The notes beneath the pieces are model-generated. The model had not been told where the DNA came from. It did not search any database and was given only the letters and a program-made list of their open reading frames with translations. A program made the translations under genes and the position numbers. Below are positions 1 through 49,975 of a stretch of 64,000 nt of DNA, in pieces; position 1 is the stretch's first letter, and each line of letters begins with the position of its first letter. The stretch is from Takakia lepidozioides (lineage: Eukaryota; Plantae; Bryophyta): the NCBI GenBank assembly GCA_030704615.1, contig CM060732.1:13888001-13952000 (forward strand), read 5' to 3'.

Positions 1-451
1 GAGCCTCCGACTTCGGTCCCGGGAGTGCGATCCTTCCTAGGACTCGCCTCCTATTACCGGAAGTATGTGAGAAATTTCGCCAAGATTGCGGGGCCGCTGT
101 CAGACCTTCTGTGTAAATCTAAAGTCTGGGCATGGAACACCTTTTGTGGCCAAGCTTTTGCTGAATTGAAGCAGCGGATGGCGGAAGCTCCAGTCTTGAA
201 AATCCCGGAGTTCGATCGTCCGTTCGAGATACATACAGATGCGTCGGACTTCGCGATTGGGGGTGTACTGATGCAAGATGAACGTCCAGTGGCTTACGAA
301 AGTAAGAAACTGAATGAAGTGGAGCGACGGTGGCCGACGCATGAGAAAGAGATGAAGGCGGTGGTGCACTGTCTTGAGCTTTGGCACCACTATGTTGGTT
401 CCAACCCAGTGAAGGTGTTCACGGACAATGTCACGGTGAAGTATTTTGCCA
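1..451 (+). mobile_element. Ty3/Gypsy chromovirus pol fragment (RT thumb/connection and RNase H), truncated at 451
   Basis: ORF 25-690 has [27 protein letters not shown] and [12 protein letters not shown]. Similarity to the other copies stops after GTATTTTGCCA (451) and unrelated sequence follows. Confidence 0.95.
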
Positions 452-567
452 TTAAAATTCTATTAATCTTGAAAATCATCACTATCGTCGTCCTGTCCTT
501 GACTGTCCTGCTCCGCCTCCACCCCGTCATTGTCTTTCTCATCTCCAGCGGACTGCTCATTGGCCAG

Positions 568-2163
568 TGTCGCGCACCTCACTTCGGTAAGCTCCCCCCT
601 CAAGTCATAGTTACTCGCTTGATGCGCGCGCCTAACTCCCAACTTGGCCGCCGGGCCAACTTGGAGCTCTGGCTGCTCACCGGGGCATAACGGTCCCCAT
701 TTGATCTCCCAAAGAACCCTCCAACGGTTTGGAACCAGCCGAATTCCCTTTGGTAGTTGGCGGTCCGGAACAGCTCCCCACTCTTTGGTCGCTTTCCGGC
801 TCGCTTGCTTACTCACTAGTTTTTGGTCACCAACGGGCTTGCACCGTTCTCGGGGTTACTACTCCCTATATATACTGCTGTAGCTGTCCACGGGGGTTTC
901 ACAAACAACCATGCCATTTTATGGCGAACCACCACGAACACCCTCGACTCCTGGTGATGAGTCGCGGTGAGTCTTGGCCAACCCACCACGGCCCGTATGG
1001 ACCATGATGAGTCCCAAGACTCCCCACTACTCCCACCACGAGGTCTCCGCCCCAGGGTGAGTCCTATGCCACCCCCACTAAGACCCGCTAAGCTACCACC
1101 ACCCCTTGTGGAGCCACCCCCACCGCAACCGGTGTGCGGGGCTCCACCTAGTGAGCGCCTCCGCCTCCTTGAGTGCCTTGGGCACTCAAGGGTGCTTCAG
1201 CCCCCATACCTATCGCTGCCACTGCCCCCACCACAGGGGCAGCCCCTCTTGTGTCCCGACCCCCCTGCCCTCAAGGCAAAGGGCCGCGACACACACCCCT
1301 ACCAACAGGGAGTCGATGTCCTCATCGGCTTGTCCATTTTGTGGAAACGAACATCCAAGTTGTGGCGTCCCACATCAAGGAGTTTGTTTCCGTACCATGG
1401 CATCCCATGACAAAGAACCAAACCCCACACTTGACTCTACTCTCCACTAGCTAGTTCGGCCGACTTCCTCCAAGTCCCGGCCAAGGGTGGAGCCTCTCAA
1501 GCTCCTCCCTGTGCACTCTTCTTGGCTACTTCAAGGCCAAGGAACGATCCTCCCCGAGGATCGAATCGCCCTTACTACAACAACATTGTTTGCGACGCTC
1601 ATGATGCCGCTTTTGGCATCACCTTGAGCAAGGGTTCACCTCGAACCCTCTTTGACTAGGAAGATAAACTTGAACCAACCGCGCGCCCCAATCACTACAA
1701 TTAGGTCCGCCTTGGAATGCTGGCCTGAGGTACGGGAACACGCCGAAGCGCACTACGACTTCGTCCCGAGGCTACACGATTATAGTACGTGAACGGAAGC
1801 ACGTAGCTTCCGCGTTAGCCCGCACTACAAAGCAACCCCCTCGGTAGCGCAGTTATAGTATGCGCACGCGCCAGGTGCGCACTAGCACGTGAACTCCTAA
1901 AGAAGGCGCAAGTTTCCTTGCCTCTTGGATGGGAGTCACCCGATTTCGGCACTGCGCAAACACACGATTAAACCAATTTACCTCTCCCACTTTTGTAAGC
2001 TAGCATGCATTCTATACACTAGCCAACCACATCATGCATCAACATTCCAAACAAAATAGGACGCACAACATTTGGAACCCATTTCCTTTATTACAATTTT
2101 TTTTGTACAATACAAGTTTTTGCAATCAGATTCCTAAGCTAGCTAAACTGGGCTAAGCATGCA
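568..2163 (-). mobile_element. Complete 3' LTR (~1.6 kb) of chromovirus copy A
   Basis: On the minus strand it begins TGCATGCTTAG directly after the purine tract GGGGGAGGAAA and ends GGTGCGCGACA, the same end that precedes the PBS at 8751. Homologous to LTR sequence at 6425-7904, 46871-47369 and 48884-49975. Confidence 0.92.
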
Positions 2164-5100
2164 TTTCCTCCCCCACGCTCCAAGGTTGATGTCCCCATCA
2201 ACGCTTCTTTCGCTTTTGAGGTCGCCCTTCAAAAATTGCAACCGCTTCGGATGCGTTTCCCATTTCAGAGGCACGCACCCAAGATGCCTCCACATGATGA
2301 TAGCCCTTCCATTTGACGAGATACTCCGTTTCTCGGTTCTTGAACCTCCTCGACTTAAGTACTGCCTCCACCTCGTACTCAGGTTCATTTTCATGATCCA
2401 ACAACACAGGTGGCGGACGCAACACTTGATGTCGATTCGGACGCGCTTCATCTTTGAAGTAAGTCTTCAAAAGGGAGACGTGGAATACTGGATGCACCTT
2501 GCTATTTGCCGGCAGCTTCAATTCATACACATCCTCATTCATAACCTTCCGGATGCGAAAGGGTCCCGCATACGGAGGTACGAACTTTGGACTCACTTCC
2601 GGAGGTAGTCGGAAATTCTTGATGTTCAACCAGACCTCCGTGCCTGCCTCAAACTTCACTTCCCTCCGCTTCCGATTTGCCTGCCTTTCATACCGTTTCC
2701 TAGCTTTGGCAGCGTTGTACTTTGCGAGCTTCAACAAACGCTTGCGTTCTTCCAGTACCGCCGCTACTGCCGGTTCCTCAACGTCCTGGGCAACCCAACT
2801 TGTCGGCACCAGAGGTGCTTTTCCATAGACCAATACAAAAGGGGAAACTCCCGTTACGGAGTGTTCTGTGTTATTATAACAGAACTCTGCCACGTCTAAG
2901 TGTTCCACCCAGTCTGTTTGGTCTGCCGACACGTAATTCCGCAAGATCTGCTTCACTACGGAATTCACTCTTTCCGTTTGGCCGTCGGTTGTAGGTCAGA
3001 AGGTGGTGCTCATCTTCAGCCTCGTCCCCATCTTCTTCCAAAGTGCCCTCCAAAATTTACTCGTAAACTTTGGATCGCGGTCCGAGACAATATCCTTCGG
3101 GACTCCATGATGCTTTAAGACGTGGGCGAAGTAAAGTCGCCATGTTTCCTGCGCCGTTGCCGTCCCCTTGGTAGGGATGTAATGGCCCATTTTACTGAAC
3201 CTATCCACCACCACCATGATTGCATCGAATCCTTTTGACAGCGGCATAGCAGTCATGAAATCCATCGAGATGCTTTCCCAAGTCCCCTCTGGAATCGGCA
3301 AGGGTTGTAACAGCCCCGCTTGCTTTTTGTACTCGTTCCGGTTTTGTTGGCATGTGGTGCATGTCTTGACATACTCCTCTGCCTCTTCCCTCAATTTGGG
3401 CCAGAAATACTCTTTCTTCAAGAGTGCCGCAGTGCGCTTGGCTCCGCCGTGGTCCGCAAGCGGGCTATTATGACATTCTCTCAAGAGGCTATCTCTGATC
3501 CCTCCCTTCGGCACGTAGAGCTGCTTTTGCTTATACCGGAGCAGTCCATTTTGCAAGTGGAACTGCGATTTAACCCCCATCCTCAAGTCCTCTATCACGG
3601 ACTTTGCCAGCTCGTCCTTCCGGCAAGCCTTTCGGATCTTCCTTTGGAGCGCCGTCTCGCCCCTGTACACCAACAGAAGCTACTGCTTTCTACTTAAAGC
3701 ATCGGCCACCACGTTATCCCGTCCCGGTTTGTACTGGATATCCACATCGAACACCGCCAAAGTATCTTGCCACCTAAGTTGTTTTGGGGACAACTTGGGC
3801 TGCGTGGCAAAATACTTCAGCATGAAATTGTCCGTGAACACCTTCACTGGGTTGGAACCAACATAGTGGCGCCAAAGCTCCAGACAGTGCACCACCGCCT
3901 TCATCTCTTTCTCGTGCGTCGGCCACCGTCGCTCCACTTCATTCAGTTTCTTACTTTCGTAAGCCACTGGACGTCCATCTTGCATCAGTACAACCCCAAT
4001 CGCGAAGTCCGACGCATCTGTATGAATCTCGAACGGACGATCGAACTCCGGGATTTTCAAGACTGGAGCTTCCGCCATCCGCTGCTTCAATTCAGCAAAA
4101 GCTTGGCCACAAAAGGTGTTCCATGCCCAGACTTTGGATTTACACAGAAGGTCTGACAGCGGCTCCGTGATCTTGGCGAAATTTCTCACATACTTCCGGT
4201 AATAGGAGGCGAGTCCTAGGAAGGATCGCACTCCCGGGACCGAAGTCGGAGGCTCCCAGTCCAAAGATTGCTTTCACCTTCCTGTCATCCATTCTGATCT
4301 CATCCTGTGTAATCACATGCCCCAGGAACTCCACTTTTGTGACCCCGAATTTGCACTTTGAAGCTTTGGCATACAGCTTCCCTTCCCGCAATTTCTGGAA
4401 CACCCTTTTGAGGTGCTCCAGGTGCTCCTCCTTTGTTTTCGAATACACCAAGATGTCATCGATGTACACGATCACAAAGTAATCCAACCACTCCTGGAAA
4501 AGGCTGTTCATCGGCGTGCTAAAGGTCGCGGGAGCGTTGGTGAGTCCAAAAGGCATCACCAAGAACTCATATGAACCATACCTTGTCCTGCACGCGGTCT
4601 TCTCCTCATCTCCTTCTGCCACTCGAATTTGATGATAGCCGGAGCGTAGATCGATCCGGCTGAAATACTTCGCTCCTGCCAACCGATCAAAAAGGTCATC
4701 GATCCTTGGCAAAGGGTACCGGTTTTTTATAGTCACCTTATTCAAAGCCCTGTAATCGACACACATCCGCAGCGTCCCATCTTTTTTGTCTGCGAATAGC
4801 ACCGGGGCTCTGTAAGGTGACTTACTCGGCCGGATGTATCCCTTTGACATTAGATCTTTGAGCTGAGTCTTCAGCTCGACCAACTCTCTGTGGCTCAACC
4901 GGTAGGGCGCCTTGGCAGGCGGTTCCAATCCCGGTATCACCTCAATCTTGTGGTCAACTCCTCTTCGCGGTGGCAAGCCGCTTGGTAAATCCTCCGACAT
5001 CACATCCTGGTATTTCTCCAAAATCCCCTTGATCCAATCTAGGTCGGCTCCCCATCGCCTTCTCCCTTCACTTCTCTAATGTAGAGCAAAAACTGGGCTC

Positions 5101-5531
5101 GTGCGCCTCCTCCACGGCCCACTCCCTTGCTGACAGAAGGTTATTCGCCCTCCCAGGGTTTGGGCGTTTCCGACACTCGTAAGACCTCGCCACCATTCCC
5201 ACATGGCAGCGTGACTACTCTCTTGCGGCCATCTATGACCGCTCCGGATTTGCTCAAAAATGTCATCCCCAAAATGAGATCCACTCCATCGATCTCGCAG
5301 ATGGTGAAGTTCTCACGTCCCTCCCAACTCCCCAGTTAAAGAGGAACATCAAACGCCAACCTTGTCACCAATTGCGGTCCTTTGGCAGAACGCACCTCAA
5401 TAGAGGCCCCCACGTCACTTGTCGGAGTCCCAGCTTTGTGCCGTTGCCGGTGTCATGAAGGAGTGCGACGCTCCTGTGTCCACCAACAACGACACGTTAG
5501 TTCCGGATATTATCCCGTCCACGAACAATAA
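2164..5531 (-). mobile_element. Chromovirus copy A internal region: partial protease, RT, RNase H, integrase, chromodomain and PPT, with frameshifts
   Basis: RT YIDD (ORF 4140-5021), RNase H DAS (3680-4264), integrase HHCC and SMDF...SDRD (2996-3673), AGPF motif and chromodomain YEVEAVL...YLVKWKGY...SW (2198-2968). [12 protein letters not shown]...LSPKQLRWQ resembles the Galadriel clade (from memory). Broken just upstream of the protease DTG at 5531. Confidence 0.95.
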
Positions 5532-7904
5532 AATTTTGGAGGGCACTTTGGAAGAAGATGGGGACGAGGCTGAAGATGAGCACCGCCTTTCGACCTACGA
5601 CCGACGGCCAAACAGAAAGGGTGAATTCCGTAGTGAAGCAGATCTTGCGGAATTACGTGTCGGCAGACCAAACAGACTGGGTGGAATACTTAGACGCGGC
5701 AGAGTTCTGTTATAATAACACAGAAACATCCGCAACGGGAGTTTCCCCTTTCGTATTGGTCTATGGAAAAGCACCTCTGGTGCCGACAAGTTGGGCCGCC
5801 CAGGACGTTGAAGAACCGGCAGTAGCGGCGGTACTGGAAGAACGCGAGCGTTTGTTGAAGCTCGCAAAGTACAATATTGCCAAAGCTAGGAAACGGTATG
5901 AAAGGCAGGCGAATCGAAGCGGAGGGAAGTGAAGTGAAGTTTGAGGCAGGCACGGAGGTCTGGTTGAACATCAAGAATTTCCGACTACCTCCGGAAGTGA
6001 GTCCGAAGTTCGTACCTCCGTATGCGGGACCCTTTCGCATTCGGAAGGTTATGAATGAGGATGTGTATGAATTGGAGCTGCCGGCAAACAGCAAGGTGCA
6101 CCCAGTATTCCATGTCTCCCTTTGAAGCCTTACTTCAAAGATGAAGCGCGTCCGAATCGGCATCAAGTGTTGCTTCCGCCACCTATGCTGTTGGATCATG
6201 AAAATGAACTGAGTACGAGTGGAGGCAATACTTAAGTCGAGAGAGTTCAGGAACCGAGAAACGGAGTATCTCGTCAAATGGAAGGGCTATCATCATGTGG
6301 AGGCCTTGGGTGCGTGCCTCAGAAATGGGAAATGCATCCGAGGCGGTTGCAGCTTTCGAAGGGCGACCTCAAAAGCGGAAGAAGCGTTGATGGGGACATC
6401 AACCTTGGAGCGTGGGGGAGGAAATGCATGCTTAGCCCGGCTTAGCTAGCTTAGGAATCCGATTACAAAAACTTGTATTGTACAAAAATTTGTTATAAAG
6501 GAATTGGGTTCCAAATGTTGTGCGTCCTATTTTGTTTGGAATGGTGATGCATGGTATGGTTGGCTTCTTTGGGAGTTCACGTGCTAGTGCGCACCTGGCG
6601 CGTGCGCGTACTATAACTGCGCTACCGAGGGGGTTGCCTTGTAGTGCGGGCTAACGCGGAAGCTACGTGCTTCCGTTCACGTACTATAATCGTGTAGCCT
6701 CGGGACGAAGTCGTAGTGCGGCTTCGGCGTGTTCCCGTACCTCAGGCCAGCATTCCAAGGCGGACCCAATTGTAGTGATTGGGGCGCACGGTTGGTTCAG
6801 GTTTATCTTCCTAGTCAAAGAGGGTTCCAGGGAACCCTTGCTCAAGGTGATGCCAAAAGCGGCATCATGAGCGATCGCAAGCAATGTTGTTGCAGTAAGG
6901 CGATTCGATCCTCGGGGAGGATTGTTCCTTGGCCTTGAAGTAGGCCAAGAAGAGTGCACTGGGAGGAGCTGGAGAGGCTCCACCCTTGGCCGGGACTTGG
7001 AGGAAGTCGGCCGAACTAGCTAGTGGAGAGTAGAGTCAAGTGTGGGGTTTGGTTCTTTGCCATGGGACGCCATGGTACGGAAACAAACTCCTTTGATGTG
7101 GGACGCCACAACTTGAATGTTCGTTTCTACAAAATGGACAAGTCGATGAGGACATCGACTCCATGTTGGTAGGGGTGTGTGTCGCGGCCCTTTGCCTTGA
7201 GGGTAGGGGGTCGGGACACATGAGGGGCTGCCCCTGTGGTGGGGGCATCGGCAGCGATAGGTATGGGGGGCTGAAGCACCCTTGAGTGCCCAAGGCACTG
7301 AAGGAGGCGGAGGCGCTCACTAGGTGGAGTCCCGCACACCGGGTTGCGGTGGGGGTGGCTCCACAAGGGGTGGTGGTAGCTTAGCGGGACTTAGTGGGGG
7401 TGGCATAGGACTCACCAAGGGGGCGGAGAAATCGTGGTGGGAGTCGTGGGGAGTCTTGGGACTCAGCACGGTCCATAGGGGCCGTGGTGAGTGGGCCAAG
7501 ACTCACCGCGACTCATCACCGGGAGTCGAGGGTTTTCGTGGTGGTTCGCCATAAAATGGCATGGCTGGTTATGAAACCCCCGCGGACAGCTACAGAAGTA
7601 TATATAGGGAGTAGTAACCCGAGAACGGTGCAAGCCCGTTGGTGACCAAAAACTAGTGAGTAAGCGAGCGAGCCGGAAAGCGACCAAAGAGTGGGGAGCC
7701 CGTTCCGGACTGCCATCTACCAAAGGGAATTCTCCTAGTCCCAAATAGGTGGAGGGTTTAGAGGGAAGCGAAGGGGGACCGTTATGTCCCGGTGAGCAGC
7801 CGAAGCTCCAAGTTGGCCCGGGCGGCCAGGTTGGGAGTCAGCGCGCGCATCAAAGCGAGTAATTATGACTTGAAGGGGAGCTTACCGAAGTGAGGTGCGC
7901 GACA
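5531..7904 (+). mobile_element. Chromovirus copy B: 3' half of integrase, chromodomain, PPT (6407-6424) and 3' LTR (6425-7904, ~115-bp internal deletion near 6565)
   Basis: ORFs 5558-5932, 5877-6125 and 6219-6449 match the integrase and chromodomain of copy A in the opposite orientation. The LTR ends GCGCGACA at 7904. Confidence 0.93.
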
Positions 7905-8569
7905 ATAATTGTGTAACCTCGGGACAAAGTCTTAGTGCAACTTCGGCGTGTTCCCGTACCTTAGGCCAACATCTCAAAGCGGGCCAAATTGTAGTGAGTG
8001 GGGCGCACGGTGAGTTCAAGGTTATCTTCATAGTCAAAGGGGTTCAAGGCGAACCCTTGCTCAAGGTGATGCCAAAAAGCGGCACCATGAGCGGTCGCAA
8101 ACAATAGTTGTTGTAGTAAGAGGATTCGATTCTCGGGGATGATCATACCTTGGCCATGAAGTGGGCCAAGAAAAGTGCACTGAGAAGCTCCACCCTTGGC
8201 CGTGACTTTGGGGAATCGGCTGAACTAGCTAGTGGGGAGTAAGAGTCAAGTGAGAGTTTGGTTCTTTGCCACGGGACGCCATGACACCCCACGACTCCCA
8301 CCACAAGGCTTTAGCCCCACCGTGATCATATGTCCCCAGTGAGCATCTCCGCCCCCTTGAGTGCCTTTGGTCCTCAAGGTGCTTTAGCCCCCAGTCCTAT
8401 TGCTTCTACTGCCCCCACCACAGGGGCAGCCCCTCTTGTGTCCCGACCCCCTGCCCTCAAGGCAAAGGGCCGCGACACACACCCCTACCAACAAGGAGCT
8501 GATGCCCTCATGGACTAGTTCCTTTCTTGTGGAAACTAACATCCAAGTTGTGGCGTCCCGCATCAAAGG
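7905..8569. mobile_element. Two adjacent fragments of an older, diverged LTR of the same family: 7905-8284 (+) and 8284-8569 (-)
   Basis: 7905-8284 aligns with many mismatches to 6686-7075. 8284-8569 aligns to 1020-1380, which is the LTR in minus orientation. Confidence 0.85.
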
Positions 8570-9612
8570 GAATTCTCCTAGTCCCAAATAGGTGGAGGGT
8601 TTAGAGGGAAGCGAAGGGGGACCGTTATGTCCCAGTGAGCAGCCGAAGCTCCAAGTTGGCCCGGGCGGCCAGGTTGGGAGTCAGGCGCGCGCATCAAAGC
8701 GAGTAATTATGACTTGAAGGGGAGCTTACCGAAGTGAGGTGCGCGACACTTGGTATCAGAGCTTAGAGTTCAGTACGCGATCGTCCTTGGGATTGGCCTC
8801 ATCATGGGGTCGGGCAAGCCAAAGCGAAAGCGGAACGGCCCAAAAGATGATGATCCTGGTGAACTCGATGGGGGCGACGTGTCACCGAAGCGGCCGTTTG
8901 AGGAAGCGACGCAGGTTTCTGAAAGCGAGGCCGCTCAAGAGCGGGAGGAATCCGAGGAGTCGGAGCCCGAGGAATCCGTGAGAGCTCCGACCGACCGACA
9001 GATGCCTCCCATGCCGGCAGCCTTTTGGGAAGGGTTGTTGGCGCAGTTTGGCGGGACGTTGAAAGACGTGTTGAAGGCGGCTAATGCCACTTCCACTAAG
9101 GCAAAGTTTAAAGTGAAGCCTAAGGAACCCGGCACCTTCGAGGGCGTCCGAAATCGGAAGGCACTCAACAACTGGCTCCTGGAGCTAAAGCAGTACTTCC
9201 GGGCGGCAAAGTTGAGTGACGAGGATCGGGTGGAAGTGGCTCCCACCTATTTGAGGGGCTATGCTCAACAATGGTGGCAGAAACGCCTTCACGACCGAGG
9301 CCCAAGCCCGGAAACCTTGAACTGGAGTGGGTTCAAGGAATTGATGAAGAGACAGTTTGTGCCCTTCAACGCGTCCTGGCTTGCCCGGGACAAGATGAGG
9401 AATTTGAAGCAAACAGATGACATTCGGGGGTATGTCCAGGCTTTCAATGTGCTGTTGCTCGAAGTCGCGGATATGGCAGAACCAGAAATGGTCTTCAACT
9501 TTGTGGCGGGACTGGCCCCATGGGCCAGGCGGAAGTTGGAGGAGAAGCCACCCAAGACTTTGAACGAGGCAATTGAGAGGGCTGAATGTTTCTCGGATGT
9601 CCGTAGGGGTGA
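8564..9612 (+). mobile_element. 3' end of a 5' LTR (8564-8748), PBS and N-terminal gag (ATG 8804), truncated at 9612
   Basis: GCGCGACA-CT-TGGTATCAGAGC. ORF 8750-9724 has retrotransposon-gag motifs (KPKEPGTFEG, YLRGYAQQWW, LKQTDDIRGYVQAF). Confidence 0.93.
8751..8762 (+). promoter_or_regulatory. Primer-binding site complementary to initiator tRNA-Met
   Basis: TGGTATCAGAGC, 2 nt after the LTR end; this is the canonical plant tRNA-iMet PBS. Confidence 0.92.
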
Positions 9613-10254
9613 GTCGTGGGGAGTCTTGGGACTCAGCACGGTCCATAGGGGCCGTGGTGAGTGGGCCAAGACTCACCGCGACTCATCACCGGGAGTCGAG
9701 GGTTTTCGTGGTGGTTCGCCATAAAATGGCATGGCTGGTTATGAAACCCCCGCGGACAGCTACAGAAGTATATATAAGGAGTAGTAACCCCGAGAACGGT
9801 GCAAACCCGTTGGTGACCAAAAACTAGTGAGTAAGCGAGCGAGCCGGAAAGCGACCAAAGAGTGGGGAGCTGTTCCGGACTGCTAGGAGTTGGTCGCCAA
9901 AAAAGACATGGGCTATTTGTGAGACCCCCGTCGACCCCTACAGAAGTATATATAGGAAGTAGTAACCCTGAGAACGGTGTTGCAAGTCCGTTAAGCGAGC
10001 AAAAGCTAGTGAGCAAGCAAATGAGCTGGAAAACGACGAAAGTGTAGGGAGCTATTCCGGACTGCCTACAACTAAAGGGAATTCCCACTGAGCCCGCGTT
10101 GTCGAGGGTCCCGTGGGGGAGCAAGGGGGACCGATGTCCCGGTGAGGAGTCGAAGCTCCAAGTTGGCCCGACGGTTAGTTTGGGAGTCAGGCGCGCGCAT
10201 CAAAGCGAGTAACTATGACTTGAAGGGGAGTTTACCGAAGTGAGGTGCGCGACA
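9611..10254 (+). mobile_element. LTR fragments: copy-B-type LTR piece (9611-9883) fused to the 3' end of a diverged LTR (9884-10254)
   Basis: 9611-9883 is nearly identical to 7441-7713. 9884-10254 is diverged and ends GCGCGACA. Confidence 0.88.
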
Positions 10255-15873: not shown

Positions 15874-15973
<100 letters not shown>

Positions 15974-15996
15974 AGATTGGGGGCTTTCAGTACTGC

Positions 15997-27650: not shown

Positions 27651-27652
27651 TT

Positions 27653-30291: not shown

Positions 30292-30304
30292 CTTGCATGC
30301 TTGA

Positions 30305-32589: not shown

Positions 32590-33919
32590 CTTATGCGCAT
32601 CTTTTCTTGTTGAAGAAGTGCCTCAATCTGTTGTTGCACCAGATTTTCTTCAGCTTCTGATAGTCTATTTGCTGGTGTTCTTGTGGCAGGGAACCCTTGG
32701 GTATTGATTTCGTGTTCAACATCTGCAAAGTGCAATAAGTCTGCTTTGTTCAGGGCAAAACTGTACTGGTTCCTGTGGCACAACTCTATCATCTGCTACT
32801 TCTGTTCTGGAGTGAGTTCAGGAGAAAACTTGAGTTTGCTTCGTATACCTTCCCACCTTTGTTGTTCCTCCAGTGTTTGCATGTCTTCTTCCGTCCGAAT
32901 GTCATCTCTCCTATGGCATGCAAGTAAACCAGATGAGCTTCTTTCCTTTGCTGGTTTGTGACTTTTGTCCAATCTTCCAGTTCATCATCCGAGTTGGGAT
33001 TTGTACGGTTACCTCCATTCCAGATCTTGGTGTAGGCATCCTTGATAAAACCTTCCTTACTTCCTTGTAACTGGGGTCATCAAGCAGATCTGGGTGTTCA
33101 TTGTCTTGGAGGTCTTCCGCCCATATGTCTAGGAGGTAATCCTCCATTGCCTCTTGGTCTGAGTTGTAGCCTTGATCATCCTCTTCCACATCAGAGCCCT
33201 CAGTTGAGTGTGAACTCTCACTGTCGTTCATGTCCGATGCACAATTAGATAGCCCATCCTCATCCATTGGTGTGAATAAGCTTTGGCTGGCGTGTATACC
33301 TACTATCTGTTCCACTGCCATAACCTCTGTTTTGATCTGAGTGTCCTCGATCAATGGCTCCACAGCCAAGTTCTTGCAGAACTCGTGAAAGTTGCCAATC
33401 GTTGGCTTTAGGTGGTTCATGGTGTGAAGTGGGAAGTAAGCCACATTCAGACCAGGCCCATATCTTACTCTCAACGTTTCTGTTTCCATATCAATTACTG
33501 CCCTGAACTTCTTCAAGAAGTCCAGCCCGAGCAACATACTGTAAGTGTCCGTATCCACCACCATGAAAGTGATATTGTTAGTCAGTTTTCCAACAGTGAC
33601 CTTCAAATTGTCGAGCACACCCATTGCTGTTTCTACAGCACCTGAGGCCACCCTATACGACATGTCTCAATCTGTTAACACACAGCCCATGAATCCCAAA
33701 TCCCTTACTGTTGTTGCTTCTATCACGGAGATCATTGCCCCTGTGTCTATCTGGCCCATTACTTGGAAGTTTCCAATGGTTACCAGAGCATGCAAAGCAT
33801 TTACTTTGCCTGTGAGCATAAAAGATGGCTTCCATATCCTTGTTGCTAGTTTCAGGTGTTAGTTTTACCTCTTGGGCAGTAGGGTACGGTGGACCAAAAG
33901 AGACAGATTTTTCCTCCAT
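32590..33919 (-). mobile_element. Second Ty3/Gypsy family: degenerate aspartic protease, acidic linker and start of RT
   Basis: IDTGAMISVI near 33740; FMVVDTDTYSMLLGLDFL in ORF 32911-33663; HEINTQG...RLSEAEENLVQQQIEALL in ORF 32577-32792. Confidence 0.8.
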
Positions 33920-40320: not shown

Positions 40321-40389
40321 GAGCGGGAAGGGGATTTCGACCCCTGCCCTATGAAGCCCCAATGACTACTCCTAACCGCTGAACTACCC
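40321..40389 (-). ncRNA. tRNA-derived (SINE-head-like) sequence
   Basis: Minus strand has A-box-like TAGTTCAGCGG and B-box-like GGGTCGAAATCC at tRNA-like spacing. No convincing acceptor stem, so probably not a functional tRNA. Confidence 0.45.
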
Positions 40390-40964: not shown

Positions 40965-41844
40965 GGTTTGCCGACACATAATTCCGCAGAATTGTTTCAC
41001 CACGGAATTCACCTTTTCTGTTTGGCCGTCCGTTGTGGGTTGGAAGGATGTACTCCTCTTTAGCCTCGTCCCCATCTTCTTCCAAAGTGCCCTCCAGAAT
41101 TTTCTTGTAAACTTTGGATCGCGGTCCGAGACAATATCCTTCGGGAGTCCATGGTGCTGGAAGACGTGGGCGAAGTAAAGACGCCCCGTCTCCTCCGCCG
41201 TTGCCGTTTCCTTGGTGGGGATGAAATGACCCATTTTGCTGAACCTATCCACCACCACCACCATGATTGCATCAAATCCCTTTGACAGCAGCAAAGCGGT
41301 CATGAAATCCATTGAGACACTTTCCCAAGACCCCTCTGGAATCGGTAAAGGTAGTTACAGCCCCGCTTGCTTTTTGTACTCACTCCGGTTTTGTTGGCAT
41401 GTGGTGCATGTCTTAACATACTCATTGGCCTCCTCCCTCAGTTTGGGCCAGAAATACTCTTTCTTCAAGAGTGTCGCAGTGCGCTTGGCTCCGCCGTGGC
41501 CCGCAAGCGGGCCATCGTGACATTCTCTCAAGAGACTATCACTGAAGTCTCCCTTCGGCACGTAGAGACGCTTTTGCTTGTACCGGAGCAGTCCATTGTG
41601 CAAGTGGAACTACGACGTAACCCCTAGCCTCAAGTCCCGCATCACGGACTTCGTCAACTCATCCTTCCGATAAGCCTTCCGGATCTTCCTTTGCAGCTCC
41701 GTCTCACCTCTATACATCAACATGAGCTGTTGCTTTCTACTCAAAGCATCGGCCACCACATTGTCCCGTCCCGGTTTGTACTGGATATCAACGTCGAACA
41801 CTGCCAAAGTGTCTTGATACCTAATTTGTTTTGGGGACAACTTA
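40965..41844 (-). mobile_element. Diverged chromovirus copy: end of RNase H and N-terminal integrase
   Basis: ORFs 41610-41840, 41355-41603 and 40767-41312 match the integrase with premature stops. Homology ends near 40965. Confidence 0.9.
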
Positions 41845-42260
41845 TGTCGCGCACCTCACTTCGGTAAGCTCCCCCTCAAGTCATAGTTACTCGCTTTGAT
41901 GCGCGCGCCTCACTCCCAACCTGGCCGCCGGGCCAACTTGGAGCTTCGGCTGCTCACCGGGGCATAACGGTCCCCCTTTGTTCTCCCAAAGAACCCTCCA
42001 CCGATTTGGAACCAGCAGGAATTCCCTTTGGTAGTTGGCAGTCCGGAACAGCTCCCCACTCTTTGGTCGCTTTCCGGCTCGCTCGCTTACTCACTAGTTT
42101 TGGGTCACCAACGGGCTTGCACCATTCTCGGGGTTACTACTCCCTATATATACTTCTGTAGCTGTCCCCGGGGGTTTCACAACCAGCCATGCCATTTTAT
42201 GGCGAACCACCACGAAAACCCTCGACTCCCGGTGATGAGTCGCGGTGAGTCTTGGCCCAC
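41845..42260 (-). mobile_element. 3'-terminal 416 bp of a chromovirus LTR, nested in the diverged copy
   Basis: Begins TGTCGCGCACC on + and aligns to 568-985. Confidence 0.92.
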
Positions 42261-44624
42261 GGACTGGCCCCATGGGCCAGGCGGAAGTTGGAGGAGAAGC
42301 CACCCAAGACTTTGAACGAGGCAATTGAGAGGGCTGAATGTTTCTCGGATGTCCCTAGGGGTGAAAGACAAGGCCGTACGGAGCTGAACCACAAGAAGAT
42401 TCGGCGGAAAGGTGACTCCTTCCGACCGGAAAAGAAGTGGGATAGGCCACGCGGCGATAATGGCACGTGGAAATCGAAGGGAGGGCCTTCACACGTCAAG
42501 GCGGCACCCGGTGCTCCGAAAGGAAAAGCGGGTGGAGCGGCTTATGGCGGACAGAAGGCGACCTTTGATGGAGTGTGTTTCAATTGCGGGGAGCCCGGGC
42601 ACATGGCCAAGAAAAGCACGAAGCCCCGGCAATTGAACATGACTCGGGCGACCACGGAGCTGTCGGAAGATACCATCAGTCGCTTGGTGGAAGCGGTGGT
42701 CGCCAGGACTTGCAAGGTAGGCAAATTTTCTTGTGAGTTGTATCAGGAAACTGGCGCCTTACGAAAAGGGAGTCAGTTATTGTTCGTGGATGGGATAATA
42801 TCCGGAACTAATGTGTCGTTGTTGGTGGACACAGGAGCGTCGCACTCCTTCATGACACCGGCAACGGCACAAAAGCTGGGACTCCCGACAAGTGACGTGG
42901 GGGCCTCTATTGAGGTGCGTTCTGCCAAAGGAGAACACAGTTGGCGACAAGGTTGGCGATTTGATGTTCCTCTTCAACTGGGGAGTTGGGAGGGACGTGA
43001 GAACTTCACCATCTGCGAGATCGATGGAGTAGATCTCGTTTTAGGGATGACCTTTTTGAGCAAATCCGGAGCGGTCATAGATGGCCGCAAGAGAGTAGTC
43101 ACGCTGCCATGTGGGAATGGTGGCGAGGTTTTACGAGTGTCGGAAACGCCCAAATCCGTGGGAGGGCGAATAAACCTTCTGTCAGCAAGGGAGTGGGACG
43201 TGGAGGAGGCACACGAACCCCAGTTCTTGCTTTACATTAGAGAAGTGAAAAGAGAAGCGATGGGGAGCCGAGCCCAGATTGGATCAAGGGGATTTTGGAG
43301 AAATACCAGGATGTGATGCCGGAGGATTTACCAAGCGGCTTGCCCACGCGAAGAGGAGTTGACCACAAGATTGAGGTGATACCGGGATCGGAACCGCCTG
43401 CCAAGGCGCCCTACCGGTTGAGCCACAGAGAGTTGGTCGAGCTGAAGACTCAGTTCAAGGATCTAATGTCAAAGGGGTACATCCGGCCGAGTAAGTCACC
43501 TTACGGAGCCCCGGTGCTATTCGCAGACAAGAAGGATGGGACGCTGCGGATGTGTGTCGATTACAGGGCTCTGAATAAGGTGACTATCAAAAACCGGTAC
43601 CCTTTGCCAAGGATCGACGACCTCTTCGATCGGTTGGCAGGAGCGAAGTATTTCAGCCGGATCGACTTGCGCTCCGGCTATCACCAAATTCGGGTGGCGG
43701 AAGGAGATGAGGAGAAGACCGCGTGCAGGACAAGGTATGGTTCATATGAGTTCTTGGTGATGCCTTTTGGGCTCACCAATGCACCAGCGACATTTAGCAC
43801 GCTGATGAACAGCCTTTTTCAAGAGTGGTTGGATGACTTTGTGATCGTGTACATCGACGACATCTTGGTGTACTCGAAAACAAAGGAGGAGCACCTGGAG
43901 CACCTCAAAAGGGTATTCCAAAAATTGCGAGAAGGGAAGCTGTATGCCAAAGCTTCAAAGTGCGAATTCGGGGTCACAAAAGTGGAGTTCTTGGGGCATG
44001 TGATTACACAGGATGGGATCAAAATGGATGACAGAAATGTGAGGGCGATCTTGGACTGGGAGCCTCCGACTTCGGTCCCGGGAGTGCGATCCTTCCTAGG
44101 ACTCGCCTCCTATTACCGGAAGTATGTGAGAAATTTCGCCAAGATCGCGGGGCCGCTGTCGGACCTTCTGTGTAAATCCAAAGTCTGGGTATGGAACACA
44201 TTTTGTGGCCAAGCTTTTGCTGAATTGAAGCAGTGGATGGCGGAAGCTTCAGTCTTGAAAATCCCGGAGTTCGATTGTCCGTTTGAGATTCATACAGATG
44301 CATCGGACTTCGCGATTGGGGGTGTACTTATGCAAGATGGACGTCCAGTGGCTTACGAAAGTAAGAAACTGAATGAAGTGGAGCGACGGTGGCCGACGCA
44401 CGAAAAAGAGATGAAGGCGGTGGTGCATTGCCTTGAGCTCTGGCGCCACTATGTTGGTTCCAACCCAGTGAAGGTGTTCACGGACAATGTCACGGTGAAG
44501 TATTTTGCCACGCAGCCCAAGTTGTCCCCAAAACAACTTAGGTGGCAAGATACTTTGGCAGTGTTCGACGTGGATATCCAGTACAAACCGGGACGGGACA
44601 ATGTGGTGGCCGATGCTTTAAGTA
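42261..44624 (+). mobile_element. Chromovirus copy C: C-terminal gag, zinc knuckle, protease, RT and RNase H
   Basis: CFNCGEPGH, LVDTGASHSF, YIDD, DAS...E...TDN...ADALS. Homology ends at GCTTTAAGTA (44624). Confidence 0.95.
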
Positions 44625-46870
44625 CCGCGCCAACTGAAGCCGAGCACTCTGAGCGCATGTTTCTTCCGCTTTTTGTAGATGTGTCGTCCTCTTCTTCGCG
44701 CCAGAACATTTTCTCTGTGCTTCTGCATGTGCGATTGCAAATGATTGTTGTTGCTTTCATGCTTATCTGTAGGAACAAAGTTGTTTTTGCTTTCATGCTT
44801 ATCCCTACTCTCCCTGTCACAACTGTTGATTTGATTTGGATGGTGCCGCCGTGTTGGGGATGACAGAGTGAAGATGATCGGGACACGGTGGTGTATCCTC
44901 GACTGCTCCAAGTCGACGAGCGGCGACTCCAACCCATCGACTGCAGTCTGACAGTCATCGACAGCAGTCTGCGGATTCTGATATTCGCATTCTCGGGTCG
45001 CCTACGTGGGCACTGGAGGGCAATCCAAAACTAGTTCCTTTTGTTGGCGGAAGAGAGGCGCTGGAGCGGGAGTACGCCCGAATAGGCATTTGGGAGATTG
45101 CCTCTGCAGCAGTCGGCATGGCAGGTGCAGGGCGACGGAAACAGGCAGCAGATCCGCCCATCCATGAGGTCGATGCACAGGCAGGGGAGCCCGCCCACAC
45201 GAAGAAGAAAATAAAGGTGAAGCACATGCAATCCCTAGCCAAAGAGCAGGCACACGTTGCTGAGGGGGGAGTGAACAGGACACCCACCAAACACCAAGAG
45301 GGTGTGACTTCCCCGGGGTCGAAGGTGGTGGACCTGGAGGCCTCAACTACAGCCACGCCATCTAAGAAACAAAAGGCCTGAGAGAGGGCAAAAGACAGGG
45401 TAAGAGAACATGGCAGAGAGTGTAATGCCAATCTAGTTCGTCGGGGTGTACTTGGGCTATGTTCTCCATCCATGCGGCAAGCCGATGGTTCCCGTCCCAT
45501 ACGAAGAACATTTTTTCGGACAAGTGCTGGAAAAGAGGATCGTTAACAATCAATTTCTCGAACTCGCCGTTTCGCATTTCTCGATTTTTAGCTGTGGAAT
45601 TAGAAGACCATGCTTTGTAATTGCTATGTGCTTTGCTGACAGACCAGAATTGACCAAGATTCACTCATGGCACATACATTTTCATTCAGAAATCAAGCAG
45701 CTTCCCTGTGCCATATGGGGAATATACAGGCTTCGATAATCTTCTGTTAATGTTATTTGCAATTCACTGCCAGTATGCTGGGACGTGTCCTTTGTCGTAT
45801 GGATTGCTGTTTGCACAAGGTGCAGTATGCAAATGCTGGAATGTGCAGTAGGACCCTTCCCACTGGGACACAGAACTAGCAATCTTGTAAAGGCATCACA
45901 TTTGCAGAACAGTAACAATGTATTTGTAGCAAATTGGAGTCTTCTCATAAAGGTGGACGAAATTCACATGTAGCCATGGCGATGCGGCACCACCAAGTGT
46001 ATAATTCCTCACAAAAAAATAGGGTGCAAGAAGATGAATGTAATATAATTGCCACTAACTCCTTCCCGAATGTGGAATGTCAAGCAGTCCGACCAGTATC
46101 CTGCCGTAGGGCCTTGTGCAGCTCGTTGAAACTCAGTGTTGGAGCATGGATGAAGACGTCCACTGCGGATATGCAACTCATGCGCTTCATAAAAATGTAA
46201 TAAAGGTGTTTGCAGGGGACGTATGCTGCATTCCTCGATTCCATAACAAGGAAGTCCTCACAGTTGCAAGCTGGGTACTGTGAAACCGTGAGACAAAACT
46301 GACCGGGTGCACTCGAATCGTATGTCAGTGCTGCCGAGGCAAAGGCGCGCCTCAAGTACAAGTCTCGGATGGTGAAGTACGTGGCCATTGTTGATCCCGC
46401 ACTCGGTGACGACTTTCTTGTGGAGGTGGGGAAGCACTACTCACGGGCTCTTAAGCCAACAATGACAATCGAGAAACTACATCGTCTAGCCACAGCATGT
46501 GTGGATGCAACTGAGAAGGTTAATCATTCTGAACCAACTTGGACTCTTCATGCAACAATGTGTTCCCTTACTTTATTTCACTTACTAATATCCACGTTGG
46601 TTGGACAGATCCGGTGGCTCCAAATCTGGAATGGGTCTCAAAGTATTCGGGACATGTGGAGCTTCCCAAAACCTGACAAACTATCCGACCCCACATTCGA
46701 CCTCTGGATGAACCGCATGACATGGTGGTTTCAGGTTGTTTTCAAGCTTTTTTGGTGCTTCCCCTCTTGTATCACGTAGATTTCTGGCATTTCTTGAAGA
46801 ATGCTGACTGATGGGGACTGTCCGCAGGTCACCACAAATGCGCAAGAGCAGTTGGACACCCAAGCCCACC
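44625..46870. other. Non-retroelement mosaic containing a ParB/Srx-like fragment (-, ~45400-45580), a SWIM zinc finger (-, 46080-46360) and plus-strand coding remnants; probably DNA-transposon derived
   Basis: FFVWDGNHRLAAW; CNCEDF...CKHL; coding-like pieces at ~44960-45381 (+) and 46369-46779 (+, apparent intron). Confidence 0.55.
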
Positions 46871-48883
46871 AGATAACCTTGAACCAACCGTGCGCCCCAA
46901 TCACTACAATTGGGTCCGCCTTGGAATGCTGGCCTGAGGTACGGGAACACGCCGAAGCCGCACTACGACTTCGTCCCGAGGTTACACGATTATAGTACAT
47001 GAACGGAAGCACGTAGCTTCCGCGTTAGCCCGCACTACAAGGCAACCCCCTTGGTAGTGCAGTTATAGTACGCGCACGCGCCAGGTGCGCACTAGCACGT
47101 GAACTCCCAAAGAAGGCGCAAGTTTCCTTGCCCCTTGGATGGGAGTCACCCGATTTTGGCTCTTCGCAAACACACGATTACCCAATTTACCTCTCCCACT
47201 TTTGTAAGCTAGCATGCATTCTACACACTAGCCAACCACACCATGCATCACCATTCCAAACACAATAGGACGCACAATATTTGGAACCCATTTCTTTATA
47301 ACAAATTTTTGTACAATACAAGTTTTTGCAATCGGATTCCTGAGCTAGCTAAACCGGGCTAAGCATGCATTTCCTCCCCCACGCTCCAAGGTTGATGTCC
47401 CCATCAACGCTTCTTCCGCTTTTGAGGTCGCCCTTCGAAAGCTGCAACCGCCTCGGATGCGTTTCCCATTTCTGAGGCACGCACCCAAGATGCCTCCACA
47501 TGATGATAGCCCTTCCATTTGACGAGATACTCTGTTTCTCGGTTCCTGAACCTCCTCGACTTAAGTATTGCCTCCACCTCGTACTCAGGTTCATTTTCAT
47601 GATCCAACAGCATAGGTGGCGGACGCAACACTTGATGCCGATTCGGACGCGCTTCATCTTTGAAGTAAGGCTTCAAAGGGAGAAAAGGAATACTGGGTGC
47701 ACCTTGCTATTTGCCGGCAGCTCCAATTCATACACATCCTCATTCATAACCTTCCGAATGCGAAAGGGTCCCGCATACGGAGGCACGAACTTCGGACTCA
47801 CTTCCGGAGGTAGTCGGAAATTCTTGATGTTCAACCAGACCTCTGTGCCTGCCTAAAACTTCACTTCCCTCCACTTCCGATTCGCCTGCCTTTCATACCG
47901 TTTCCTAGCTTTGGCAATATTGTACTTTGCGAGCTTCAACAAACGCTCGCGTTCTTCCAGTACCGCCGCTACTGCCGGTTCCTCAACGTCCTGGGCGGCC
48001 CAACTTGTCGGCACCAGAGGTGCTTTTCCATAGACCAACACGAAAGGGGAAACTCCCGTTGCGGAGTGTTCTGTGTTATTATAACAGAACTCTGCCGCGT
48101 CTAAGTGTTCCATCCAGTCTGATTGGTCTGCCGACACGTAATTCCGCAAGAATTGCTTCACTACGGAATTTACTCTTTCCGTTTGGCCGTCTGTCGTAGG
48201 TCGGAAGGCGGTGCTCATCTTCAGCCTCGTCCCCATCTTTTTCCAAAGTGCTCTCCAGAATTTACTCGTAAACTTTGGATCGCGGTCCGAGACAATATCC
48301 TTCGGGACTCCATGATGCTTTAAGACGTGGCGAAGAAAAGTTGCCCTGTCTCCTGCGCCGTTGTCGTCTCCTTGGTGGGGATGAAATGGCCCATTTTACT
48401 GAACCTATCTACCACCACCATGATTGCATCAAATCCTTTTGACAGCGGCATAGCAGTCATGAAATCCATCGAGACGCTTTCCCAAGTCCCCTCTGGAATC
48501 GGCAAGGGTTGTAACAGCCCTGCTTGCTTTTTGTACTCGCTCCGGTTTTGTTGGCATGTGGTGCATGTCTTGACATACTCCTCTGCCTCCTCCCTCAGTT
48601 TGGGCCAGAAATACTCTTTCTTCAAGAGTGCCGCAGTGCGCTTGGCTCCGCCGTGGCCCGCAAGCGGACTATCATGGCATTTTCTCAAGAGACTATCCCT
48701 GATCCCTCCCTTCGGCACGTAGAGACGCTTTTGCTTATACCGGAGCAGTCCATTTTGCAAGTGGAACTGCGATTTAACCCCCATCCTCAAGTCCTTCATG
48801 ACGGACTTCGCCAGCTCATCCTTCCGGCAAGCCTTCCGGATCTTCCTTTGGAGTGCCGTCTTGTACACCAACAAGAGCTGCTG
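46871..48883 (-). mobile_element. Inverted segment of copy C: integrase, chromodomain, PPT and 5' ~500 bp of the 3' LTR (46871-47369)
   Basis: ORFs 48320-48874, 47853-48236 and 47404-47676. LTR start TGCATGC at 47369. Confidence 0.94.
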
Positions 48884-49975
48884 TCAAAGAGGGTTCCAGG
48901 TGAACCCTTGCTCAAGGTGATGCCAAAAGCGGCATCATGAGCGATCGCAAGCAATGTTGTTGCAGTAAGGCGATTCGATCTTCGGGGAGGATCGTTCCTT
49001 GGCCTTGAAGTAGAGCAAGAAGAGTGCACTGGGAGGAGCTGGAGAGGCTCCACCCTTGGCCGCGACTTGGAGGAAGTCGGCCAAACTAGCTAGTGGAGAG
49101 TAGAGTCAAGTGTGGGGTTTGGTTCCTTACCATGGGACGCCATGGTATAGAAACAAACTCCTTGATGTGGGACGCCACAACTTGGATGTTCGTTTCTACA
49201 AAATGGACAAGTCGATGAGGACATCGACTCCCTGTGTTGTAGGGTGTGTGTCGCGGCCCTTTGCCTTGAGGGCAGGGGGGGTCGGGACACATGAGGGGCT
49301 GCCCCTGTGGTGGGGCAGCGGCAGCGATAGGTATGGGGGGCTGAGGCACCCTTGAGTGCCCAAGGCACTCAGGGAAGCGGAGGCGCTCACTAGGTGGAGC
49401 CCGACACACCGGGTTGCGGTGGGGGTGGCTCCACAAGGGGTGGTGGTAGCTTAGTGGGACTTAGTGGGGGTGGCATAGGACTCACCATGGGGGCGGAGAC
49501 CTCGTGGTGGGAGTCGTGGGGAGTCTTGGGACTCATCACGGTCCATAGGGGCCGTGGTGAGCGGGCCAAGACTCACCGCGACTCACCACCGGGAATCGAG
49601 GGTCTTCGTGGTGGTTCGCCATAAATGGCATGGCTAGTTGTGAAACCCCCGCGGACAGCTACAGAAGTATATATAGGGAGTAGTAACCCCGAGAACGGTG
49701 CAAGCCCGTTGGTGACCAAAAACTAGTGAGTAAGCGAGCGAGCCGGAAAGCGACCAAAGAGTGGGGAGCTGTTCCGGACTGCCATCTACCAAAGGGAATT
49801 CTCCTAGTCCCAATTAGGTGGAGGGTTCTAGAGGGAAGCAAAAGGGGACCGTTATGTCCCGGTGAGCAGCCGAAGCTCCAAGTTGGCCCGGGCGGCCAGG
49901 TTGGGAGTCAGGCGCGCGCATCAAAGCGAGTAACTATGACTTGAAGGGGAGTTTACCGAATTGAGGTGCGTGACA
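48884..49975 (+). mobile_element. Remaining ~1.1 kb of the copy C 3' LTR
   Basis: Aligns to 6815-7904 and ends GGTGCGTGACA at 49975. Confidence 0.93.

Follow-up and report, generated by a model that had tools for sequence, protein, structure and literature searches.

Plant cases of chromothripsis and chromoanagenesis are known from haploid induction and biolistic transformation. The capture of filler DNA at end-joined breaks, yeast retroelement cDNA included, was reportedly the subject of classic work by Moore and Haber and by Teng et al. (1996). Chromothripsis and chromoanagenesis are characterised by clustered breaks, mixed order and strand of the pieces, some loss, and joints that are blunt or carry short microhomology (PMC6371609). 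The retrotransposon clusters of maize centromere 10 hold partial, chimeric and internally deleted gypsy elements beside a tandem repeat, with inversions, microhomology joints and captured mitochondrial DNA, and frequent double-strand break (DSB) repair was given as the cause (Wolfgruber et al. 2016, PMC4806543). The yeast fragile site FS2 consists of an inverted Ty1 pair (PMC3778018), and two further papers describe palindromes as inducing DSBs (PMC8053094, PMC3855049). LTR-retrotransposon eccDNA of Arabidopsis includes sub-genomic circles, some of them fused to other DNA (Zhang et al. 2023, PMC10462705).

The window analysed here, a stretch of 64,000 nucleotides from Takakia lepidozioides, is a well-resolved case of a known process, ordinary break repair in repeat-rich DNA, and not a new or dedicated system. 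Its two clusters are probably nests of a very abundant Ty3/gypsy chromovirus beside a 96-bp satellite, where scars of DSBs repaired by NHEJ lie on top of nesting and deletion. The scars comprise two flipped segments, one cut-and-swapped piece and captured foreign DNA, and at least 14 joints fall in two stretches of ~10 kb (Table 1), while breaks in the intervening unique 30 kb would be invisible. Partial and chimeric elements, inversions, microhomology joints and captured foreign DNA beside a tandem repeat are common to the window and maize centromere 10, and the claim of the initial annotation that no established decay route gives such an arrangement is not supported. The window, however, shows rearrangement resolved at the kb scale within single elements, two reciprocal in-place inversions with a fragment at one joint of each, and an LTR hairpin as hot spot, and its satellite may not be centromeric. 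With chromothripsis the window shares seemingly clustered breaks, mixed piece order and strand with both sides of breaks kept, the loss of some fragments, and an end-joining signature of short microhomology or none with small losses; its pieces, however, measure 0.3-5 kb over about 10 kb as opposed to Mb, differ widely in age, and are in several cases connected by joints that are more simply explained. The head-to-head pairs A/B and E/D with their facing ends deleted, and the breaks at the 93-nt hairpin, resemble FS2 and the palindromes, but repair there is mainly by homologous recombination or BIR and in the window by end joining, with causation suggested by position only. Filler-DNA capture likewise ligates foreign fragments into a repaired break, but the pieces in the window are kb-sized, one of them (Q4) is not retroelement DNA, and the ends of P8 and P9 are unlike those expected of cDNA. 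The permuted P8+P9 also resembles a re-opened 1.3-kb circle, although PMC10462705 documents no reinsertion of circles without LTR ends.

Table 1. Pieces of the two clusters and copies of the LTR hairpin, in window coordinates
Feature	Position	Strand	Content	Similarity
P1	1..451	+	Young-copy RNase H fragment (reference internal ~2560-3010), cut at 451/452	97.1% to 3805-4255(-), 95.8% to 44060-44510; homology stops at 451
P2	452..567		About 115 bp of non-family DNA separating P1 from copy A's LTR terminus	
Copy A	568..5531	-	3' LTR (568 to ~2161), chromodomain, integrase, RNase H, RT, part of protease; truncated at 5531	
Copy B, 3' part	5531..7904	+	Integrase core through 3' LTR (~6425-7904)	
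C1	7905..8283	+	Old LTR segment (LTR ~379-766)	About 84-86% to young LTRs
C2	8284..8566	-	Segment of the same old LTR as C1 (~781-1143), inverted in place	Direct match to minus-strand copy A at 1014-1068 and 1147-1378
P8	8564..9612	+	Last ~185 bp of LTR, PBS, first 864 bp of internal region (gag)	99.5% to B's 3' LTR
P9	9611..9883	+	LTR positions ~1133-1405	98.9% to B's 3' LTR
C3	9884..10255	+	Old LTR end (~1226-1596), terminus at 10254/5	79-82% to young LTRs
Q1	40965..41843	-	Old integrase/RNase H fragment	87.5% to 2920-3796; even, about 85-92% along its length
Q2	41845..42260	-	Last 416 bp of the LTR of copy E, truncated inside the hairpin, joined to D	
Q3	42261..44624	+	Copy D: gag C-terminus, zinc knuckle, protease, RT, RNase H	Pfam
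Q4	44625..46870		Captured 2.25-kb fragment, non-family, without terminal repeats	
Q5	46871..48883	-	Copy D integrase, chromodomain, first ~500 bp of 3' LTR, inverted in place	94.1%, collinear with 1662-3685
Q6	48883..49976	+	Rest of copy D 3' LTR (~506-1596)	
LTR hairpin	7432..7524	+	93-nt near-palindrome, ~45-bp stem	
Further hairpin copies	49502-49594; 948-1040(-); 9611-9694			

Pfam and comparison within the window agree with the initial annotation that all family pieces belong to a single chromovirus family and that the window has no intact copy. The LTR is about 1.6 kb and the internal part about 4.65 kb long, and the Pfam domains of the family are gag, zinc knuckle, protease, RT, RNase H, integrase and chromodomain. 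On copies A and D the Pol order is protease, RT, RNase H, integrase, with the chromodomain after the integrase; the minus strand of copy A matched Chromo, SH3_Tf2-1, rve, Integrase_H2C2, RT_RNaseH and RVT_1, and matches were also found in P1 (RT_RNaseH_2), Q1 (rve) and P8 (Retrotrans_gag). The LTR 3' terminus reads ...GCGCGACA in six copies, in copy A at 568, and a PBS of tRNA-iMet type lies at 8751-8762. The window holds no 5' LTR start; the 5' boundary would be at 6425, where TG follows a purine run resembling a PPT. Judged from the sequence, the start probably lies some 390-500 bp upstream of the beginning of homology to 48883, and 48883/4 and 46870/1 would therefore fall inside the LTR. 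Words of the family reach depths of 2e5-9e5 in the reads versus about 41-57 for single-copy DNA, and the identities, between 79 and 99%, point to pieces of very different age. From each of copies A, B and D 30-50% of the length is missing, and a partner exists for only 4-5 of some 20 piece ends; overall, the near-conservative shuffling that had been proposed is not supported.

Every joint was checked by self-BLAST and in a base-level view, and the 11 junctions first described as non-terminal were all recovered within ±2 bp. Their positions, with the microhomology where both partners are known, are 451/452, 5531 (1 bp), 8283/8284 (1 bp), 8564-8569 (6 bp, CAAAGG), 9612/9613 (2 bp, GA) and 9883/9884 (0-1 bp) in the first cluster, and 40964/40965, 42260/42261 (0 bp), 44624/44625, 46870/46871 and 48883/48884 (1 bp) in the second; six of the scored joints thus have 0-2 bp and one has 6 bp. 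No TSDs were found at the 11 junctions and no common motif across 10 break sites, as had also been claimed. Further joints occur at 6564/5, 7904/5 and 41843-5, the last two being LTR termini. The pieces are in mixed order and strand. Five pairs of piece ends abut in reference coordinates (gap 0-20 bp) against 0.32 expected by chance (P = 2.5e-5), four of these pairs being age-matched and the fifth age-mismatched. Losses at reciprocal breaks were 5, 5, 7-13 and 14-17 bp. The end-joining of DSBs, originally invoked for the whole, is supported for about seven junctions, where on sequence grounds it would account for the reciprocal breaks with 5-17 bp lost, the in-place flips, the foreign fragments and the microhomology of 0-2 bp at most joints; the remainder is compatible with ordinary deletions between head-to-head copies.

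Copy D contains a 2.0-kb in-place inversion, cut at the RNase H/integrase border and ~500 bp into the 3' LTR. Exactly 5 bp are gone at each break, GAAAG and TCCTA, each checked against two intact copies; Q3 accordingly ends in ...AAGTA, 5 bp short of the reference start of Q5. The unrelated Q4 occupies one joint of this inversion and has no match within the window and no Pfam match, and P2 has no similarity elsewhere in the window even at a word size of 7 nt. Both pieces are non-family DNA, a restriction of the rearrangements to TEs is not supported, and the contrast drawn between TEs and "collinear" genes is an ascertainment effect, because breaks are recognisable only where a repeat supplies the reference. 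One of the intervening genes was retrieved as a STIG1 domain at 24135-24845, and the ORFs scanned gave no oxygenase or transposase Pfam match for the others named. Minus-strand ORFs of Q4 appeared SWIM-like and ParB_N-like from language-model features only.

The old LTR C, made up of C1 to C3, received two cuts; 0.36 kb of it was flipped, and the 1.3-kb P8+P9 became ligated into the second joint. At the 781 end of C2 14-17 bp were lost, and its 1143 end lies inside the hairpin. P8+P9 is one contiguous stretch, from LTR position 1133 to gag position 864, that was recut with its halves in swapped order: P9, which in an intact copy lies just upstream of P8, is here downstream of it, with 7-13 bp lost between the two. 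Other LTRs show 87-97% identity to it, less than the LTR of copy B, and its insertion site is 660 bp past the 3' LTR of B itself; the 5' part of B is missing from its normal place in the junction view. P8+P9 could nevertheless derive from a sibling copy, extrachromosomal cDNA or a circle instead of B itself, and it can be read in one of two ways, as a re-opened 1.3-kb circle or as the product of three cuts and a swap.

Stepwise decay over a long time, by independent nestings, illegitimate-recombination deletions and a few unrelated small inversions, is an unlikely explanation for the clusters as a whole. Here the fragments at the joints would have come in later through unrelated insertions, or would be extrachromosomal retroelement DNA that was captured, such as cDNA or truncated circles, and would not be shards of neighbours. 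Several joints do fit it. Copy B is fused head-to-head to copy A at 5531 (inverted self-BLAST matches 2021-3058 vs 6565-5531 and 568-1905 vs 7904-6564), and a single deletion spanning the 5' ends with which such copies face each other can explain each of 5531 and 42260/1. The joint at 6564/6565 is an ordinary illegitimate-recombination deletion of 115 bp in copy B with a 2-3 bp repeat, and read contigs of other copies continue collinearly through both 5531 and 6564/5. Nesting accounts for 7904/5, where an LTR terminus meets the mid-LTR of an older copy, and for 41843-5, where the LTR terminus of Q2 abuts Q1 inside an older RNase H/integrase fragment. The spread of ages points the same way, Arabidopsis mutants commonly contain LTR-element circles that are truncated or chimeric (PMC10462705), and PMC11372161 describes yeast breaks that capture retroelement cDNA. 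Ordinary deletion, however, explains neither the two inversions nor the swap, and a later insertion would have to strike the exact joint of an earlier inversion twice, with Q4 and with P8+P9. The latter fragment is moreover nearest, among the LTRs of the window, to a copy only 660 bp away whose own 5' end is missing, and the breakpoints mismatch cDNA ends: a TATA box at 7597-7606 places the predicted transcript start ~190 bp downstream of the start of P9. Aberrant cDNA was rejected on the same position, and integrase-mediated autointegration because the D inversion has its joints within the LTR and at the border between RNase H and integrase, where 5 bp are lost instead of duplicated.

Template switching at forks stalled in hairpin-rich repeats (FoSTeS/MMBIR), which would have made the inverted and permuted segments by copying, is improbable. 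The hairpin and the inverted copies are plausible fork barriers, 8564-9 has its 6-bp microhomology, the overlap between P8 and Q3 is 104 bp long at 99%, and an imperfect inverted 14-mer (11/14) spans the two D breakpoints, although 1.6% of random position pairs equal it. At the C inversion inverted microhomology is absent, and most joints have only 0-2 bp. Q5 and C2 exist only in inverted form, once each, with no copy left in normal orientation and no copied segment beside its source; the inversions are copy-neutral and therefore nothing was copied. Reciprocal coordinates with small losses at both ends also run against the prediction of copying.

Artefacts, either chimeric molecules from whole-genome amplification or ligation or assembler errors in a high-copy repeat, are about as improbable. 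The family is extremely abundant, and no junction was bridged by read k-mer contigs, these being too short to bridge a high-copy family. Repeat-induced misjoins, however, switch copies within homology, whereas homology is lacking where the junctions here lie; the two arms of the inverted A/B pair differ by 5%, so the pair is no fold-back of one molecule. Chimeric reads and repeat-induced misjoins do not produce balanced in-place inversions in which both joints match and 5 bp are lost, and error-free contigs at single-copy depth cover old low-copy segments beside joints, e.g. 7916-8057 and 9949-10076. A dedicated or selected shattering of transposon clusters as genome defence, suggested because ORFs are destroyed and inverted repeats suited to dsRNA are made (568-3058 vs 5531-7904, and Q5 vs neighbouring sense pieces), is scarcely credible, since the breaks share no cis motif, the window has no associated gene and no candidate enzyme or guide, nothing points to a function, non-family Q4 and P2 are involved, the TE specificity is an ascertainment effect, and oppositely oriented insertions yield inverted repeats anyway.

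For DSB repair by end joining, the favoured reading, a single event per cluster has parsimony as its sole support, the argument being that the fragments sit exactly at inversion joints; the one haplotype is compatible with one event or several. The break that fused A and B at 5531 would have released the 5' part of B, and one shard of it, possibly circularised and then re-opened, would have been recaptured 3 kb away. By analogy with yeast fragile sites, the breaks may have been provoked by secondary structure at the LTR hairpin and between inverted copies of 1.6-7 kb, and the process would be passive damage and repair tolerated in gene-poor repeats, with no dedicated mechanism. The hairpin is conserved in four copies with a predicted DNA fold of -29 to -37.5 kcal/mol (z -5.7 to -9.6), and no unusual folding was predicted at the other breakpoints. 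Three independent break events, those of P9, Q2 and C, map in or at most 12 bp from it, which makes 3 of the roughly 7 break events in LTRs (post hoc, approximate binomial P about 0.01). That the hairpin together with inverted copy pairs forms a genome-wide fragile site, repeatedly seeding kb-scale multi-break events of a flip plus a captured shard, is a speculative and rather doubtful extension.

High-copy elements serve as internal rulers: with the intact structure known, breaks, flips and losses are all legible at single-base resolution. On the scale of a 64-kb window, plant repeat nests do undergo kb-scale balanced inversions with captured fragments, and a testable cause is pointed to in the LTR hairpin and the inverted copy pairs. 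If this cause were true, the family would hold a germline record of micro-chromothripsis, its rate and rules readable from thousands of copies. A genome-wide tally in this species could measure the break rate and the repair mode of repeat DNA and address the question of a single catastrophe.

Related sequence occupied two clusters in a self-comparison of the window, 1-10255 and 40965-49976, separated by about 30 kb of unique DNA. Pfam searches of the long ORFs identified one Ty3/gypsy chromovirus with gag, zinc knuckle, aspartic protease, RT, RNase H, integrase (H2C2, rve and SH3) and chromodomain. The 3′ end of its LTR reads ...GCGCGACA in six copies, and a primer binding site of the initiator-Met type follows the LTR end at 8751-8762. 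No 5′ LTR start survives in the window, and the best candidate for the 5′ end lies just past the chromodomain stop codon, where a purine run precedes TG at 6425; with this candidate start the LTR would be about 1.6 kb and the internal region about 4.65 kb long. Natural copies A, B and D in the window served as coordinate rulers in place of a built consensus. Searched as protein, the 522-aa RT-RNase H ORF gave no match above 73% identity. The family is very abundant, since its word depth is 2e5-9e5 versus approximately 41-57 for single-copy DNA (4600-10500; runs X1-X3 and X5). In a 'plant metagenome' run of another study the family was present at low depth and the locus-specific segments were all absent.

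The pieces between joints and the neighbouring features are listed in the table. The satellite sets in 760 bp past the LTR terminus at 49976, and its unit holds the inverted pair TTTCCATCCG / CGGATGGAAA. An aspartyl-protease remnant at 32911-33663 (-) probably derives from another retroelement, as tblastx detected no resemblance between it and the clustered chromovirus. The oxygenase, hAT element and transposase named in the initial annotation were not found among the ORFs scanned in the window.

Pieces of the two chromovirus clusters and other features. A and B are copies of the chromovirus and C1-C3 are parts of an older LTR, C, of the same family; P1, P2, P8 and P9 (cluster 1) and Q1-Q6 (cluster 2) are further pieces. 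Piece coordinates are from the self-comparison, and joints were inspected in base-level views.
Feature	Position	Strand	Content
P1	1-451	+	RNase H fragment
P2	452-567		DNA without assignment
A	568-5531	-	3′ LTR back to protease
B	5531-7904	+	integrase core to 3′ LTR end; 115-bp deletion at 6564/5
C1	7905-8283	+	old LTR, positions 379-766
C2	8284-8566	-	old LTR, positions 1143 down to 781
P8	8564-9612	+	LTR 1413-1596, PBS, gag to internal position 864
P9	9611-9883	+	LTR 1133-1405
C3	9884-10255	+	old LTR, positions 1226-1596
Q1	40965-41843	-	old integrase/RNase H fragment
Q2	41845-42260	-	LTR 1596 down to 1183
Q3	42261-44624	+	internal positions 761-3124
Q4	44625-46870		DNA unrelated to the family
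Q5	46871-48883	-	LTR 500 down to 1, then internal 4653 down to 3130
Q6	48883-49976	+	LTR 506-1596
LTR hairpin	7432-7524, 49502-49594, 948-1040, 9611-9694		conserved in four copies
STIG1-domain ORF	24135-24845	-	domain match E 1.6e-17
Satellite	50735-64000 (to window end)		96-bp unit, ~60% GC, at least 138 units, 81-85% matches

All 11 non-terminal junctions listed in the initial annotation were found in base-level views, within 2 bp of where it had placed them. The joints carry neither TSDs nor a common motif, and microhomology is 0-2 bp at the majority of them and 6 bp at 8564-8569. Several piece ends abut in the coordinates of the unrearranged element, which would not be expected of independent truncations. 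Between the end of Q3 and the start of Q5 only 5 bp (GAAAG) are missing, as checked against A and Q1, and between the end of Q5 and the start of Q6 5 bp (TCCTA), as checked against A and B. The gap is 7-13 bp from the end of P9 to the start of P8 and 14-17 bp from the end of C1 to the start of C2, and the ends of P1 and Q1 are 8 bp apart. With P1/Q1 included, five pairs of ends lie no more than 20 bp apart, versus 0.32 expected by random placement (P = 2.5e-5), and four of the five are age-matched. The exception is P1/Q1, where P1 is 96-97% identical to young copies whereas Q1 is about 88% identical throughout. Because of this mismatch, a 41-kb inversion (452-41843) suggested by these two ends is unlikely and was dropped, and their abutment would be a coincidence. 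The end of a young RNase H fragment (451) and an LTR insertion into an unrelated older copy (41843) fall on the same reference position within 8 bp, which may be chance or may mark a place at the RNase H end that is locally prone to integration or breakage.

Two in-place inversions account for the abutting ends in D and C. Copy D (Q3, Q5 and Q6) contains a 2.0-kb inversion with the 2.25-kb Q4 in one of its two joints, and exactly 5 bp were lost at each break (sites 3686-3690 and 1657-1661 of the intact copy A). In the old LTR C, 0.36 kb is inverted and the 1.3-kb P8+P9 block occupies one of the two joints; about 82 bp of C, including most of a hairpin, are gone there. P8+P9 derives from a single uninterrupted run of 5′ LTR and gag that was cut once and whose halves changed places without change of strand. 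A small circle opened again at a different point would produce this order, and so would three cuts and a swap.

As to the source of this block, P8 and P9 are 99.5% and 98.9% identical to the 3′ LTR of B, versus 87-97% to other LTRs in the window. B is fused head-to-head to A at 5531, so that its own 5′ LTR, gag and pol are absent from where they would normally lie. The simplest reading is that the event in which A and B lost their facing 5′ ends set shards free, one of which would have been joined to a break in C at a distance of 3 kb. The block may instead come from a sibling copy or from an extrachromosomal circle; in Arabidopsis mutants, LTR-element circles that are truncated or chimeric are common (PMC10462705). 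The gag pieces of P8 and Q3 share 104 bp with 99% identity (9509-9612 and 42261-42364); the usual divergence among family copies is 4-6%, and this stretch is covered by no third copy in the window. Their likeness may reflect either conservation or a common source. Q4 has no match elsewhere in the window, and it was ruled out as a complete transposon, terminal repeats, matching flanks and a Pfam match all being absent. Two minus-strand ORFs in Q4, at 46080-46388 and 45362-45664, hold CxC...CxH (SWIM-like) and DGNHR (ParB_N/sulfiredoxin-like), readings that come from language-model similarity only, without a Pfam match.

Balanced inversions with two matching joints are unlikely to be artefacts of assembly or library, and the same holds for the inverted pair A/B, whose arms differ by 5%. 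Logan k-mer contigs (4600-10500, four runs) are approximately 70-200 bp long, and none was shown to bridge a joint, being too short in a family with a word depth this high. These contigs cover the old low-copy segments next to the joints error-free at single-copy depth, and other genomic copies run on collinearly at 5531 and 6564/5. Aberrant first-strand transfer at the RNA 5′ end was considered for the gag-LTR joint at 9612 and rejected, as the TATA box at 7597-7606 places the predicted start of transcription about 190 bp further downstream than the start of P9. Autointegration was rejected too: it should leave LTR termini and 5-bp duplications, and the joints are internal and have lost 5 bp. 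Copying mechanisms (FoSTeS/MMBIR) were likewise rejected, since they predict duplicated segments and the inverted segments are single.

Within U3 of the LTR, a near-palindrome situated 120-160 bp upstream of the TATA box folds as a 93-nt hairpin with a stem of about 45 bp; its folding energy in four copies is -29 to -37.5 kcal/mol (z -5.7 to -9.6). This conservation suggests that the structure, as RNA or DNA, serves the element itself, whatever part it may have in breakage. Three break events in three different copies map at or beside the hairpin: P9 starts at its left base, Q2 ends 12 nt past its loop, and in C the left arm holds the start of the inverted segment, with the LTR continuing from 12 bp beyond the right arm. 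These are three of about seven LTR break events in approximately 7% of the LTR (rough binomial P 0.01, post hoc), and the hairpin is a possible cause of breaks. Hairpins at all breakpoints were ruled out, as the LTR hairpin alone stands out and the other breakpoints lack special folding. Both D breaks lie in an imperfect inverted 14-mer (11/14 positions), a match reached by only 1.6% of random position pairs (p ~0.016). Comparable inverted microhomology is absent from the C inversion, and it was rejected as a general guide for inversions. The head-to-head fusions of A with B (5531) and of copies E (Q2) with D (42260/1) are the remnant expected if a deletion ran through the middle of a long inverted repeat. 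Inverted Ty1 pairs are break sites in yeast (PMC3778018), as are palindromes (PMC8053094, PMC3855049).

The initial annotation had proposed that transposon clusters were shattered and re-ligated as pieces of ~0.3-5 kb, possibly as a genome defence. Breaks with end joining are supported for about seven junctions, and the wider claims are not. Shuffling was not near-conservative overall, A, B and D each lacking 30-50% of their length; DNA from outside the family forms part of joints; and no sign of a dedicated or defensive system was seen. That 'collinear' genes look different is an ascertainment effect: without a second genome, breaks in unique DNA are invisible. Parsimony favours multi-break events, since captured fragments sit exactly at inversion joints, and each cluster may have arisen in one event or in several. 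Scars of double-strand break repair have been published for retrotransposon clusters beside a tandem repeat in maize centromere 10, where elements are partial or chimeric and inversions, joints with microhomology and captured organelle DNA occur (PMC4806543), and are comparable to those seen here. The window is a real, well-resolved and moderately interesting instance of a known process.
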